Source of the DNA: Guillardia theta CCMP2712
Taxonomy: Eukaryota > Protista > Cryptophyta
Assembly (NCBI RefSeq): GCF_000315625.1
Contig: NW_005434553.1
Span: 45,471-80,460 of the forward strand
Direction: 5' to 3'
DNA length: 34,990 nucleotides
Shown: piece by piece, positions 2,346-8,496 of the stretch
Numbering within the stretch: position 1 is the stretch's first letter
Layout of the letters: every line of letters starts with the position of its first letter
Notes under the pieces: generated by a model
Told to the model about the DNA's origin: nothing
The model's input: the letters and a program-made list of their open reading frames with translations, nothing else
Database searches by the model: none
Translations under genes and position numbers: made by a program

Positions 2346-2934
2346 CGAGACCGGGCCTCCTCCCTCCCCCCCCCCCTCCCTCCCCCTCCTCCTCTCTCCT
2401 CCTCCTCCTCGGGCCTCGTCGTCCTCCTCTTTACTCTCCTCCTTCCTCCCTGCAAGCTCAATGGCACTACCTCCCACCTACTACCTGGATCCTCGTGCCT
2501 GCTGACTCATAATTCGCTCTTGCTACCTCTTCCTCTTTCTGGCATCGCGAGGAGGATCTTACCCTCCCTCTCCCGGCTTTAATTTCTCTGCCGCATCTCC
2601 TCGTTTCTCCTCGCCATCGCTACCTGCCCGCCCTGGTCCTCCTCTTGACCTCTTCGATCCTTTGCTCGCACAGGATGCGTGCGACACAAGACGTAACCGC
2701 ACGCTGCGAGCAAGGGGGACTTTAAAGGATGGGTCATGAGGTCCGAGCTGTAAGTAAGGAACGTCACTCGCTTGTATCAGAGCATCGCAGAGCAGGAGGA
2801 CGGGATGACTTGAGTTGACTGTATCGTGCTCTAGTGGTTCTTTCTGCTTGGCTCTCAGGAGAGGAGCTACTGGAGATCGGGCCCGCTCGCTGCAGCTCTA
2901 GAGCAGGAGAGCACCGGATAGCAGCAGCGCTAGC

Positions 2935-5900
2935 ATGAACAGCGCTCCTCCTCCCCACGGGGCCCTACTCGTATCAGCCTTCGTCCTCGTGTTCCTTGCA
3001 GACCCTGGAGGAGCGGTGAACACATGGATGCAAGTTCCCATCCCCGAGTACATCTCCTGCTCCCTCCCGCTCTGCGACCCCCTCTGTGAGAACCTTGAGA
3101 GCGTCCTAGGCGAGATCTGCCCTCGAACCGCTTCCACAAACCTTATGCTCTTTGGCGGCATCCCCGGACCAGACGCGTGCTACAAGGAGGTTCAGGGGTG
3201 GGTGTCTGGCCCGAAACCCAGCGCGAGTGAGAGGAGGAGAAGAGGGAGGAAGGTGCAGTGACACGTTCCTAGGTGACCCGACGGGCTGTGGCCCCTGCCT
3301 GCTGCAGTCGGAGAAGTCAAGGTGTAACGTGAACTCGGGAGCAGGGAGAGGATACAGCGCTGGAGGGCCGATCGCTCGGACAGGTTCTGTTAGAGGAGGA
3401 GGAAGAGGAGGAGGAGGAGGAGGAGGAGGAAAGGTTGGGGGGGGGGGGGGAGGGGCCAAGGGGGAAAGAGGAAGAGGTCACTCGAAGAAGTGGCCCCCCT
3501 ATGATCGTGGATGAAACTCCCCTCCCCTCTGACTACATCGGTGCCACTATTCTCCTCATCTTCCGGGGGGAAGGACATCAACCGAAACCTTCTTTACCTC
3601 TTTCTGGTGGTAATTTTATTTAAAACTTGCCCCCGTGTTTCAAATAAAACCAGCCAAACCTATGTACAAGGTCTCCTTTTTTAAGGGGCCCGAACNNNNN
3701 NNNNNNNNNNNNNNNNNNNNNNNNNNNNNNNNNNNNNNNNNNNNNNNNNNNNNNNNNNNNNNNNNNNNNNNNNNNNNNNNNNNNNNNNNNNNNNNNNNNN
3801 NNNNNNNNNNNNNNNNNNNNNNNNNNNNNNNNNNNNNNNNNNNNNNNNNNNNNNNNNNNNNNNNNNNNNNNNNNNNNNNNNNNNNNNNNNNNNNNNNNNN
3901 NNNNNNNNNNNNNNNNNNNNNNNNNNNNNNNNNNNNNNNNNNNNNNNNNNNNNNNNNNNNNNNNNNNNNNNNNNNNNNNNNNNNNNNNNNNNNNNNNNNN
4001 NNNNNNNNNNNNNNNNNNNNNNNNNNNNNNNNNNNNNNNNNNNNNNNNNNNNNNNNNNNNNNNNNNNNNNNNNNNNNNNNNNGGGAGGAGGAGGAGGAGG
4101 ACGGGAGGGACGGGGCGGGGAGGGGTAGGGTGGGGGGGGGGGCAGGGCTGATGGACGGAGAGGAGGGGGAGCTGATGGAGGGCACTAGGTAGTGTACGGG
4201 GGTCTATCTCCGAACTGCACAGACTACTGCGACGATCTGTGGTACTACGACATCATGGCGAACCACTGGTACATGCTGTACGGGGAGTGGTGGGGCCAAG
4301 ACCGGACGTGGCAGAGAATGTGGGACTACGCGGCGTACGGGCAGCAGCATCCGTCGAAGAGATTCGGGCACAACGCAGTGCTGTCAAACAACTTCCTCTT
4401 CGTCTTCGGGGGCTTCAAGAACGGCACCTTCGACGCCTGTTGCGGTTACGACTGGGTCGTGTGTGGTGCACCCAACAACCTCGTCCCGATCTTTCCCAGC
4501 TCAGGGTGCGGGTTCCTGCATGACATGTGGTCGGCGGACACGCTCAAGTACGAGCCGTTCCAGACTCTCATCTCGCTCAACAAGCACGCGACTCAGTCCA
4601 GCACCCTCGGGACAGGAGTCGCAGCGCTGGCAGTGGACGGGAACACGAGCGGGTACTACTCGGACACGTGGGCGAACTCAGTCACGCTGACAAACAGCGA
4701 CGACGAGGCCTGGTGGCAGGTCGACCTCGGGCAGAGCTACATCATACGGAACATGACCATCTACAACCGACTCGACGCCTTCTCGGAAAGGCTCCAGAAC
4801 TTTTACGTGCTGTTTGCAACGGTCCCGTTCCAGTCAGATTGGCTGCGAGACATTCTGATAGACCCTCTTGTATTCAAGACGCATGTCATGTACGTTCAAG
4901 ATCTGCAGTCTCTTGATCTGGACATCACAGCGAGGTACGTCAGGATACAACTAGCAGGCACAAACTACCTCTCCCTTGCCGAAGTTCAGATCTGGGGGCA
5001 CCCGCTGGTGCAAGCATGGCAGAGCATGGAAGGGATGAAGAAATGGACGCAGGTCCTGCCCAACAGTGACATCTATCCCTACGGAAGGTTCGCAGCCACT
5101 CTCACCATGTACAACGAGCACACAGCCCTCCTGTTCGGGGGGATGGTGAAGGAGACTCCTTACTTCCTCGACGACACCTGGACTTGCACCCTCCCTGATG
5201 TCAACCAGACCACACAGCAAGTTGCCTGGTCCAGGCTGAGCATGAAGAAGCAGCAACCTCAGAACACGTTCCCTGTCGGGAGGTACGGGCATGCCGCAGC
5301 CTTCTCGCCTGTCTGCTCCTTGGGGTATGACATCGAACTCGGCGTGCTAGACGGGACTATCGTGCTCAACCGGGTGACTGGATCCGTCCCGGGATATGTC
5401 TACCCAGGTAACCCCCAGCAGACACCCTGGTGCCGAGGGCAGATCATCATCCATGGAGGGAGGACGAGCGCGAATCGAGACACCACAGACATCGCCTACC
5501 CCTCGGGGTTCCTGCCGGACATGTGGATCTACAACGTGTCGAGCGAGACTATCAGTCAGGTGAACTTCTCGCGGAGCTCTGGCTTCCCGAGCGCCCGAGC
5601 CCATCACGCCATCGTCCTGCACAAGGACTGGCTCATCCTGTACGGGGGGACCAGCGACTCCTGCCCCGGCTCCACCTGCGGGGACCTGTGGATGTACAAC
5701 GTGTCGGGCCCCAACTCCTGCCCTAACGACTGCAACGGGCATGGCACGTGCGAGTGGGGGTTCTGTATCTGCGATGCGGGCTTCAAGGCCGTGGACTGCT
5801 CGGAGCTGAGCTGCCCACAAGCTCAGTGCTCGTTCAGCTACTCCGATCACTGGCTGACGTGCCTCGAGTGTCACAACCAGTACGAGCCCTCCCTTCCTCA

Positions 5901-7909
5901 GTTGCTTCCTCTCTTTGTACCCCCTTCTACTCTTCGTGCCTTGCTCTTCTTTCTTCTTGTGCTGAAGGCTTTGCAGTGGTCTCTGCAACACGAGCGGGTT
6001 CTGCTTGTGCAACCAGGGATGGGGCGGAGAGTCTTGTCAGCTCATCAGCTGCCCAGGTCAGCCCCGACTACTTTTCTCCCCACCCCTCCTCTTCCTCTTC
6101 CTCTTCCTCTTCCTCTTCCTCTCCTCTCCTCTCCTCTCCTCTCCTCTCCTCTCCTCTCCTCTCCTCTCCTCTCCTCTCCTCTCCTCTCCTCTCCTCTCCT
6201 CTCCTCTCCTCTCTCCTCATCTCATCTCGTTTCGTTTTCTCTGTCTCACTCGGGTTGTCAGGGAACTGCTCGGGCCACGGGACCTGCAAGCTCGGAGGGA
6301 CGTGCGACTGCGACCCAAACTTTGGAGGGCCCGACTGCTTCGTTGCCTTCTGCCCCAACAACTGCACCACGTGGAGCGATGGGTACGACTCGGGGGCGCA
6401 GGGGGAGTGTGTCATCACCAGGAACCCGTAAGAGCAGCTCAACGAGCAGGTTATCAGGCTGAGACGCGTCAAACTGACTTGTTTCTGTCAGACCATGCTG
6501 CGGAAACGAGCCGGACTGTGTTCAGGTACTTGTGATCGCGTTCCCTTCAAGAGTTTTGACAAGTTCCTTCAAGACGTCAAAGTCGCCAAGCCCCTGTATA
6601 TCTAGAAACCCCAACTATATCCCTCCTCATCAAGTCTCCGCTACCTGCGTCTGCTCCGACACGTACGTGGCCCCCTCCCCCTATCTAACCTTCCTGGTCC
6701 ACCTCGCTCCTCCTCGCTCCTCCTCCGTCCTCTCTTGTCCACCTCATGGCTGATCGATTCTCAGCTACACTGGGATCGACTGCTCTCAGACCATCGCCGA
6801 CGTCATCATCAGCCAGCAGCTGGCCAAGGGCGTTCAGAAAAGCGCCGGCTGTTTCGCCTCGCACAGTGAAGTGTATACCGTGGAGGCAGAGGGTTTGAGG
6901 ATCAGAAAGATCTCCGAGCTTCAAGGTCATCCCCCCCCTGCCTTGCCGTCCCCTCGTCTCCTGACCTCTCGCCTGTAGTGGGGGACACAATCTTGACCAT
7001 GAACGATGCTGGGAAGGTGCTGGAGGCTTGCGATGGTGTGACTAGATGTGACTCGACCCTGTCAAGCAGCTGGACAGCACACGCGTGATCTTCTTGCACG
7101 ACCATCCCGACCAAGTCGAGACCAACAAGATCTCCTTCCTCTCCAGCGAGGGCCTCGTGTCCACGTTGGAGCTGACAGGTCAGGAGGAACCCTTCCTCCT
7201 CCTCCTCCTCCTCCTCGTCCTCCTCCTCCTCCTCCTTCCCGTCCTCCTCGTCCTCGTCCTCCTCCACCACCCCTGACGCAATCGCAGACTGGCACGCAGT
7301 CTCGTCGGAGGTAACATGCACAGGAAGGAACAACTGCGGCATCCGTCTTATGTACGGCCACGAGATGAAGCGAGGACATGGGATAGTGAGGAGGAACGGA
7401 GGTATCTCGTCCATGCCTGCTGTGAACTCTCCCTCCTCCTCCTCACTCTTTCGCTGCAGACTCGTTCGATACCGCCCGCGTCATCAGCATCGAGCGAGGC
7501 TTGTCCAGAGTTCGCTACATCGTGACCGGCAACGATCGACTGGTGGTCAACCAGGTGCTTTCGCTCCCCCACACCTCAGAGTCGGCTCACACCTCCAGCA
7601 GGCGCTGGGGATCGTGTACAGCACTGCTCTTGCTAGCCTTGAAAGCCTTCCCTTCCGCTTCCTGTTTTGGTTGTCTCCCACCTTGCTCTCGCATCCTGCC
7701 ACAAGTACTGCCATCCTCCTCCCTGTCTGTGCGTGACGCTGCTGACTGCAGGAAAGAGCCTCGAGACGGTTCTCGAATCGCCAGCTCTGCGAGCAGCAGA
7801 AATGTTGTTCAATCACCTGGTTGGGATGCTGCCGGCATGGAAACAGGGAAGTCAGTCTGGATCAGAACTAATGGCTGGTCGTACTAGAAGCAATGAGTTG
7901 GAATCATAA
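2935..7909 (+). CDS. Secreted multidomain protein: signal peptide - Kelch repeats with an inserted F-type lectin (F5/8C-like) domain - tenascin-type EGF repeats - C-terminal Hog (Hint + SRR) domain
   Basis: N-terminus MNSAPPPHGALLVSAFVLVFLADPGGA is signal-peptide-like, with an in-frame stop upstream. Kelch motifs: PSKRFGH..FVFGG..DMW, PYGRFAA..LLFGG..DDTW, PVGRYGH..IIHGG..DMW, PSARAHH..ILYGG..DLW. F-type lectin at 4570-4998. EGF: CPNDCNGHGTCEWGFCICDAGFKAVDC and CPGNCSGHGTCKLGGTCDCDPNFGGPDC. Exons 6765-7909 splice by GT-AG in consistent phase to give GCF..ISELQVGD..LELTDWH..LVVNQ. The link between the N-terminal exons and the rest crosses the gap at 3696-4082 and is inferred. Confidence 0.85.
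3696..4082. other. Assembly gap inside the Kelch-Hog gene
   Basis: Run of N; the flanks are homopolymer-rich and probably of low quality. Confidence 1.
6085..6220. repeat. (CTCTTC)n/(CTCCT)n microsatellite in an intron between EGF exons
   Basis: Tandem units lie between donor ccag|gtcagc and acceptor tgtcag|ggaac. Confidence 0.9.
6847..7909 (+). other. Hog (Hedgehog-type Hint + sterol-recognition-like region) domain spread over 7 small exons
   Basis: Exons 6765-6925, 6979-7016, 7070-7178, 7288-7401, 7460-7554, 7602-7704 and 7752-7909 give G|CFASHSEVYTVEAEGLRIRKISELQVGDTILTMNDAGKLDSTRVIFLHDHPDQVETNKISFLSSEGLVSTLELTDWHAV...MYGHEMKRGHGIVRRNGDSFDTARVISIERGLSRVRYIVTGNDRLVVNQALGIVYSTALASLESLPFRFLFWLSP... 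Confidence 0.88.
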
Positions 7910-8048
7910 CGTGTTTACCAGTCATGAACAGGATTATGTACATGATATAACGAAAGTTTGTGTAATGATTATTGATCGACTCCTCCCCTTCCGTCTTCTC
8001 CCCTCCCCTCCCCCTCCCCTCCCCTCCCTTCTCCTCCCCTCCCCTCCC

Positions 8049-8203: not shown

Positions 8204-8496
<293 letters not shown>

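Follow-up and report, generated by a model that had tools for sequence, protein, structure and literature searches.

What do the Hog domains of organisms other than animals attach to their cargo? The nature of this adduct has been an open question since the catalogue of 2008, and it is posed by a nuclear gene of the cryptophyte alga Guillardia theta CCMP2712 that lies in the stretch of DNA analyzed here, 34,990 nucleotides of contig NW_005434553.1 (positions 45,471 to 80,460 of the forward strand; C121:45471-80460 in our contig numbering), referred to below as the window. Positions 2935-7909 of the window are a single expressed gene with a coding sequence of 3636 nt, or 1211 codons plus stop, and the product is laid out as a signal peptide, an F-type lectin domain with Kelch repeats on either side, about four epidermal growth factor (EGF) modules, a short stalk ending in Gly, and a C-terminal domain that, by both homology and fold, is almost certainly a Hedgehog-type Hog domain. 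We propose that the protein is a secretory precursor from which the Hog domain would cleave itself to leave a lipid-anchored lectin, a reading whose chemistry is deduced from sequence and for which we consider the chances evenly balanced. If it is true, the alga fixes a lectin to its surface by means of a lipid, as animals do with Hedgehog.

The tail comprises 230 aa from its first cysteine (Cys1) to the C-terminus, and the junction with the cargo reads GGC TGT TTC, or Gly-Cys-Phe, at 6847-6855, the stalk ending in KSAG/CF, where the slash marks the predicted cleavage site. A sequence-only reading of this DNA had placed the Cys codon of a G/CF site at 6850-6852, which is where TGT is found, and had called the tail Hog-type. 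We assessed the identity of the tail via P0216, a public protein that covers tail residues 33-230, and via orthologues. Three orthologues with the same architecture score above the gathering cut-off of the Hint profile PF01079 (29.7 bits), namely P0121 (41.4 bits), P0122 (32.2 bits), and P0215 (46.1 bits). P0121 (1196 aa) and P0122 (1123 aa) were obtained in a search with the longer orthologue P0004 and both combine the cargo with PF01079, and the metagenomic orthologue L006, whose cargo is 54% identical, has GCFA and the same tail downstream in the same order. A tblastn search with the spliced tail matched two G. theta genes on contig C21, both of which pass PF01079; the G. theta paralogues reach up to 74.5 bits with this profile, and their alignments with the tail of the window gene are at 1e-24 to 1e-32. 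An exhaustive phmmer search with the P0122 tail against 1.84 billion representatives returned just 76 proteins at E ≤ 0.001, among them P0215, which is an orthologous EGF-GCF-Hog fragment.

The fold leads to the same assignment. AlphaFold2 models built on a 45-row family alignment have a pLDDT (predicted local distance difference test score) of 90.1 for the orthologue tail P0215:66-307 and 88.7 for P0216, the window's own product, and the best Foldseek matches of both in the PDB are structures of the Drosophila Hedgehog autoprocessing domain, 6TYY followed by 1AT0 (1.5e-9 and 3.4e-9 for the orthologue, 2.4e-6 and 7.5e-6 for P0216). On the target, the orthologue model has template modeling (TM) scores of 0.81-0.82, and the window's own fragment has 0.61-0.62. 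Inteins and bacterial intein-like (BIL) domains rank behind Hedgehog-C in both fold searches, and identity as an intein was rejected, as no C-extein is present and the helical tail runs to the end of the protein, 230 aa after Cys1. The sole Pfam hit of P0216 is Hint, over positions 54-182 of the 213 in the profile, which speaks for the assignment; the score of this fragment, which lacks the first 32 residues of the tail, is 16.8 bits, below the cut-off, and this counts against it. When tail exons of the window or of L006 were searched one at a time in Pfam, no Hint match appeared, these exons being too short to be informative; the genome-wide PF01079 search (87.1 Mb in 669 contigs), in which only five candidates were scored, exon by exon, did not list the window; and a phmmer search with a piece of the L006 tail against PDB sequences found no match.

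The window tail and Hedgehog-C (Drosophila Hh 1AT0/6TYY, human SHH) share the G/CF junction, the TxxH motif, the Hint fold, the C-terminal place in a secreted precursor, and post-Hint helices with P-F-R-[LF], and the orthologues of the window gene have PF01079 in common with Hedgehog-C. The two differ in their cargo, which in the window protein is a Kelch/F-lectin/EGF ectodomain of about 980 aa and not a Hedge domain. In both the P0216 and P0215 models confident helices follow the Hint core, and this end of about 70 aa is strongly conserved in the family (E158 in 37/40, P161 in 38/40, and F162 in 38/41, together with L186-E-S-P189). Its P161-F-R-F matches P379-F-R381-L382 in the first helix of human SHH's sterol recognition region (SRR), where P379 and R381 belong to a conserved 'HPR' motif (PMC7906309). 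This supports homology of the helical end with the sterol/adduct recognition region, from which sterol binding can be predicted only; the remainder of the helical tail (LESPxL...) differs in that it has no demonstrable counterpart in Hedgehog.

Does the Hog tail belong to the lectin at all? In the public annotation it stands alone, as GUITHDRAFT_155400 (XP_005822694.1, UniProt L1IIF4), the 198-aa 'hypothetical protein' at window 6979-7909 that we refer to as P0216. This protein shows 100% identity with the final 198 aa of the spliced model and begins at an internal Met, 32 residues after Cys1, and no public model was found in which cargo and tail are joined. The gene product has 1211 aa, not 198 aa, and the public annotation is corrected here. 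Exons were called by reading three frames over 2900-8000 and joining the candidates, and contigs from three RNA-type runs of three studies (X1, X2, and X4) were placed on 2800-8048. Every junction of the joined model has an AG acceptor and a GT donor and one open frame is retained throughout. When the contigs are combined with exon ends fixed from the reading frames, the transcript-supported junctions are 3226/3273, 5879/5977, 6056/6262, 6427/6492, 6525/6574, 6662/6765, 6925/6979, 7016/7070, 7401/7460, 7554/7602, and 7704/7752. One further junction, 7178/7288, is derived from the coordinates of record 3 of X2, a single 4232-nt contig that covers 2800-7955: 146 transcript letters separate 6923 from 7285, and with the stated cut offsets taken into account these equal 38 + 109 and therefore give this junction. 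The seven tail exons that had been read from sequence, from 6765-6925 to 7752-7909 (Table 1), proved exactly right against the contigs from the three runs, and all of the tail motifs quoted with them are present in the spliced translation. The EGF exon that precedes the tail begins at 6574 and not further downstream, which is the only correction made.

The alternative, that two adjacent genes were merged by mis-assembly or read-through so that lectin and Hog tail would each be a product of its own, could draw on the 198-aa model standing alone and on a run of undetermined bases (N gap) inside the locus. It is contradicted by single transcript contigs over 2800-7955 with in-frame splicing in three runs, and by the internal Met at which the annotated model begins. 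The last EGF module (CVCSDT/YTGIDC, the slash here marking the intron) is interrupted by the 6662/6765 intron and is complete only once spliced, which ties the tail exon to the cargo. In addition, P0121/P0322 have the cargo and most of the Hint domain in one uninterrupted genomic open reading frame (ORF), and L006 shows the same order. On the strength of the spanning transcripts, the split EGF module, and the orthologues with the same fusion, we reject the two-gene reading, which is scarcely credible.

The connection across the N gap, which the sequence-only reading had singled out for confirmation, has been established, the contigs bridging the gap in frame as one mRNA. In record 3 of X2, window position 3384 corresponds to record position 954 and 4188 to 1348, so that 393 nt of mRNA stand against 803 positions of the assembly, 387 of them N. 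A distance of 797 nt separates the ATG at 2935 (record 551) from 4188, which is therefore a third codon position, and the next codon, beginning at 4189, is in the frame of the large exon. With 393 nt bridged in the transcript and the frame kept, the gap does not interrupt the gene or its reading frame. The contig agrees with the assembly at 3501-3563 and then diverges, skipping 624 positions with ends that are not those of an intron (CG..TA), and in 3564-3695 the frame shifts relative to the orthologues; this flank looks like low-quality, error-rich assembly sequence. The sequence hidden in or beside the gap amounts to about 319 nt, after an exon 3 start of about 74 nt (3491-3563, with one base allowed for a suspected indel), and this fits the approximately 108 residues that L006 has there. 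A run of C at 3494-3499 adjoins the start of exon 3 and is the site of the possible indel.

Table 1. Exons and domains of the lectin-Hog gene, in window coordinates.
Feature	Position	Strand	Evidence
Exon 1: start codon 2935, signal-like peptide (residues 9-29 hydrophobic), conserved Cys-rich N-terminus	2935..3226	+	Transcript contigs; joint 3226/3273 GT..AG
Exon 2	3273..3384	+	Transcript contigs; homologous to orthologue N-termini
Exon 3 onward into error-rich flank 3564-3695 and N gap 3696-4082; start ~3491-3501	3491..4082	+	Contig piece 3501-3563
Large exon: Kelch repeats, F-type lectin domain (~4543-5010), further Kelch repeats, first EGF module	4188..5879	+	Pfam, PDB matches, transcript contigs
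Four short EGF-module exons: 5977-6056, 6262-6427, 6492-6525, 6574-6662	5977..6662	+	Transcript joints
Exon: end of last EGF module, 22-aa stalk, Gly-1 (6847-6849), Cys1 (6850-6852), first Hint strands	6765..6925	+	Transcripts, translation
Hint exons 6979-7016, 7070-7178: VGD, H48-D49-H50 (7097-7105), T74 (7175-7177)	6979..7178	+	Transcripts, translation, family alignment
Hint exons 7288-7401, 7460-7554: H77 of TxxH (7293-7295), VRYIVTGNDRLVVNQ	7288..7554	+	Transcripts, translation, family alignment
Last two exons 7602-7704, 7752-7909: V149 (7614-7616), P161-F162-R163 (from 7650), helical SRR-like region with LESPAL	7602..7909	+	Transcripts, P0216 identity

The secreted nature of the cargo and its domains agree with what had been read from the letters. 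The product of exon 1 is 61% identical to the N-terminus of P0121, and residues 9-29 are the sole strongly hydrophobic stretch, which is signal-like, as judged by a simple threshold and not a dedicated predictor (19-residue mean Kyte-Doolittle hydropathy, threshold 1.6). No 19-residue segment reaches 1.6 in the 945 residues after the gap, and the same is true of orthologues that cover the gap region, in line with the earlier statement that no transmembrane segment precedes the GCF site. Pfam matches on the large exon are to Kelch families, F5_F8_type_C/NedA-like domains, and teneurin-type EGF, and the spliced exons 5977-6662 encode regular CxC...YxGxxC modules. The segment 4543-5010 matches solved F-type lectins, including FBP32 (3CQO, 6.7e-22), 4GWI, 2J22, and eel agglutinin (1K12), and the label 'F-lectin' is therefore correct. 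Like the F-type lectins with which it is homologous (FBP32 3CQO, Anguilla agglutinin 1K12, and the Streptococcus lectinolysin domain), the window protein keeps part of the fucose motif H-x26-R-x-D-x4-R/K, the R-x-D-x4-R portion being read from the translation as R-L-D-A-F-S-E-R. It differs from the fucose-binding members in having Leu at the His position 27 residues upstream (Leu or Met in the orthologues), which leaves the ligand of the lectin domain uncertain. The propeller and EGF modules resemble those of Attractin/LZTR1-type proteins, with Pfam matches to Beta-prop_ATRN-LZTR1, Kelch, and teneurin-type EGF, and in our searches no Attractin/LZTR1-type or F-type lectin protein ending in a Hog domain was found.

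Given such a cargo, can the tail release it? We number residues from Cys1 (6850-6852) and take conservation counts from the family alignment. Cys1 and Phe2 are each present in 31/34 members, and a G[CS]F motif is present in matches whose junction region is covered. G27 (33/38) and D28 (37/38) are conserved, as are H48 (35/39), D/E49 (31/39), and H50 (38/39), and the TxxH motif of the window, T74-D-W-H77, corresponds to T69/H72 of Hh-C, with Thr and His each in 39/42 and the TPAH of an orthologue aligned with the TPAH of Hedgehog. The residues of the acyl shift are retained, catalysis is probably retained with them, and we regard self-cleavage at Gly-Cys as a likely prediction.

Several features of the active site and of the literature weigh against extending the Hedgehog chemistry to this protein. 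In a HMMER alignment of P0121 with 6TD6/6TYY, F-I-H-D-H falls on F-M-D46-R-N of Hedgehog, which for F-L-H48-D49-H50 of the window puts His48 in the column of the general base Asp46 with an Asp adjacent. Likewise, VVNQALGIVYS aligns with VVNSVAASCYA of Hedgehog (by motif, not by superposition) and puts Val149 in the column of Cys143 in SCYA, a column in which the family has Val in 24/41 and Cys in 0/41. In Hedgehog the change C143A/D abolishes autoprocessing, both cholesterolysis and cleavage by dithiothreitol (DTT), and C143 forms a thioester branched intermediate (PMC12054796). With the Cys143 equivalent replaced by Val, any cleavage in the window protein would therefore proceed without the branched intermediate, and His48 and Val149 together weaken the simple view that the tail works like Hedgehog. 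As pointed out by Bürglin in 2008, the Cys of motif J is replaced in protist Hog domains, including the cryptophyte sequences, motif K lacks conservation, and the nature of the adduct is unknown (PMC2362128). The helical tail, too, could have a part in docking to the membrane or in folding and not in the binding of a sterol.

One could therefore suppose that autoprocessing has been lost with the Cys143 equivalent and the Asp46, and that the intact protein carries the Hog domain as a structural or peripheral membrane-binding C-terminal domain. The C143A/D result and the Val found in this column of the window protein and most of its relatives are what such a non-cleaving Hint domain would lead one to expect, but the near-invariance of Gly-1, Cys1, TxxH, and H-x-H at a family identity of 25-50% is hard to explain without catalysis. 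The His is less of an obstacle, as 6TYY is itself an engineered D46H protein and D46H still autoprocesses in cells (PMC12054796, Fig. 1C); the passages of two papers that cite Zhao 2019 on this variant credit it with activity on a wider sterol set (PMC8529194, PMC9163320). By analogy, a His in the Asp46 column appears compatible with activity. The many inteins among the structural matches likewise argue that the N-S acyl shift at Cys1 is general to the Hint fold. Inteins use their own downstream +1 nucleophile. On balance we consider a tail that does not cleave to be improbable.

We therefore return to self-cleavage, for which the following scheme can be proposed. In the endoplasmic reticulum (ER), Cys1 would attack the carbonyl of Gly-1 in an N-to-S acyl shift assisted by T74 and H77, and a nucleophile with a hydroxyl group, held where the Hint fold meets the helical tail, would then resolve the thioester, with His48 as the putative general base. 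The nucleophile would most likely be a membrane sterol and, since epibrassicasterol is the characteristic sterol of cryptophytes (PMC4515614), probably that one. The lectin ectodomain would thus be kept on the cell surface by a lipid ester on its C-terminal Gly. Our confidence falls with each step: a lipid adduct on the cargo is a tentative prediction, somewhat short of an even chance, and that this adduct is specifically a sterol is doubtful.

Some comparative support for a lipid comes from Goniomonas, a plastid-less cryptist, in whose cargo homologue P0011 (MMETSP0114) Kelch, F-lectin, and EGF follow one another as in the window protein. Beyond the final EGF module and a stalk of similar length, P0011 ends in ...AQAGAS-TLSPH-LLLSAAAAVAVSLVATWA, where small residues are followed by a brief spacer and 18 hydrophobic residues at the end (hydrophobic stretch at 723-745), with its AGAS aligned with SAG/C of the window. 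This one transcriptome sequence, with the pattern read by eye, appears to carry a signal for a glycosylphosphatidylinositol (GPI) anchor, and its position, where the Hog domain starts in the window protein, favors a lipid-anchor role for the C-terminus of the ectodomain and is the strongest indirect argument for one. The window protein has no hydrophobic stretch in its last 100 residues and so no C-terminal GPI signal of this kind. The Hog-made lipid ester would fill the role that the GPI signal appears to fill in the Goniomonas homologue, and the sequence-only suggestion of an alternative to a GPI anchor has in this way gained comparative support. As in GPI-anchored proteins, a lipid would be added in the ER to the new C-terminus of the ectodomain after removal of a C-terminal peptide; the difference is that the part removed would be a self-cleaving enzyme of 230 aa and not a transamidase substrate. 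It is conceivable, if speculative, that photosynthetic cryptophytes swapped an ancestral GPI signal of the lectin for a Hog domain, with an ester of a sterol or other lipid as the anchor, a natural His base, and no Cys143.

A different outcome of the same acyl shift is cleavage without a lipid, in which the thioester is resolved by water or another non-lipid nucleophile, the lectin becomes soluble or is passed to another surface component, and the helical tail does no more than dock or chaperone the precursor. Hydrolysis is known to occur as a side reaction in Hedgehog-C (PMC9163320), protist Hog domains have deviant motifs J and K and an adduct of unknown nature (PMC2362128), and there is no Cys143 equivalent in the window protein; moreover, the other cargoes of the family are small secreted Cys-rich, Frizzled (Fz), or LDL-receptor class A (LDLa) domains, which are possible soluble factors. 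Such an enzyme would, however, leave unaccounted for the strong conservation of the helical region of about 70 aa, including the SRR-like P-F-R (PMC7906309), and the GPI-signal-like tail at the same position in Goniomonas, which suggests that membrane attachment is the selected function. We judge cleavage without a lipid to be rather unlikely.

Should the lipid-anchored reading hold, and the lipid be a sterol, protein sterylation would have been shown for the first time in an organism that is not an animal, and the Hedgehog mechanism would have been put to a natural experiment. The gene, well expressed and conserved, is suited to such a test in an alga that can be cultured and has a genome, and it offers a large and easily detected cargo, a defined site (KSAG/CF), a natural His base without Cys143, and a GPI-like counterpart in a sister lineage.

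How much of this was known before? Hog domains on non-Hedge secreted protist cargo are known. Bürglin (2008) listed Hog domains in expressed sequence tags (ESTs) of G. theta (crGt Hog) as well as in red algae, moss, alveolates, and jakobids (PMC2362128), and, like the window protein, the protist and nematode Hog proteins (Bürglin, 2008; warthog/groundhog; choanoflagellate hoglet) are secreted and have a C-terminal Hog domain behind unrelated N-termini. For G. theta, only ESTs were available in that study and no Kelch/F-lectin/EGF cargo was described (PMC2362128). The claim that the architecture is undescribed thus stands for the Kelch/F-lectin/EGF-Hog combination, which we did not find in the public annotation or in the literature searched (F-type lectin/Kelch in Guillardia, and Hog with cryptophyte/sterol), and does not extend to the presence of Hog domains in G. 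theta. What is new is the cargo, the 1211-aa gene model, the conservation of the architecture in environmental relatives, the His48/Val149 pattern of the active site, and the comparison with Goniomonas. The environmental cryptophyte-like relatives that conserve the architecture are the P0121 cluster (53 members), P0122, L006, P0215, P0242, and P0273.

The Hog tail is also found on other cargoes, a search for which had been suggested together with the original reading. By the family profile, G. theta has at least seven further Hog-tail loci (on C32, two on C21, and on C4, C301, C54, and C590) in addition to the window gene, and two members are named 'Hint domain-containing protein' in UniProt. 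The locus C21:338913-340622 (L001/L002) has two small convergent Hog genes with a short Cys-rich N-terminal part ending in FGCFA or CFAQ, and the small Cys-rich Hog proteins from the C21, C32, and C4 loci fall far short of the window gene in size. Across the family the cargoes comprise small Cys-rich domains, a Frizzled-type cysteine-rich domain (CRD; P0238), and an LDLa domain with a Hedge/M15-like domain (P0251).

The last of these, P0251 (591 aa, ENA metagenome; cluster members P0293 and P0294), has a cryptophyte-type Hog tail and an LDL-receptor class A match just below the cut-off (21.1 vs 24.1 bits). Upstream of its G/CF site, PF01085, the Hedgehog N-terminal signaling domain, matches above the cut-off at 24.2 bits, over profile positions 98-161 only, and weaker Peptidase_M15 matches lie in the same upstream domain. 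P0251 could be a fusion of a Hedge/DD-peptidase-like domain and a Hog domain outside animals.

A few minor observations concern other members of the family and the sequence around the gene. Two partial proteins, P0306 (MGB1591733.1) and P0320 (MGB1600114.1), are assigned to a 'Promethearchaeia archaeon' metagenome-assembled genome (MAG) and share 90%-identity clusters with eukaryotic, cryptophyte-like Hog and Kelch/lectin proteins; their probable source is eukaryotic contigs that ended up in an Asgard MAG on binning. The very long proteins P0223 (3176 aa, with 14 matched stretches), P0276 (1404 aa), and P0281 (1296 aa) have many separate Hog-tail matches and may represent tandem arrays, gene calls that were fused, or proteins made of repeats. 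In P0122, which is Logan-derived, residues ~940-1005 include a low-complexity insert of about 50 residues after TxxH that is present in neither the window protein nor P0121 and may be an intron retained in the transcript assembly. In the window gene itself, two introns are filled by long CT-rich runs of the pentamer (TCTCC)n and of (CCT)n, at 6076-6243 and 7185-7270. The stop codon TAA is at 7907-7909 and the 3' untranslated region extends to at least 7955; further downstream, just past a second N gap, lies a (CAGA)n microsatellite at 8205-8300.

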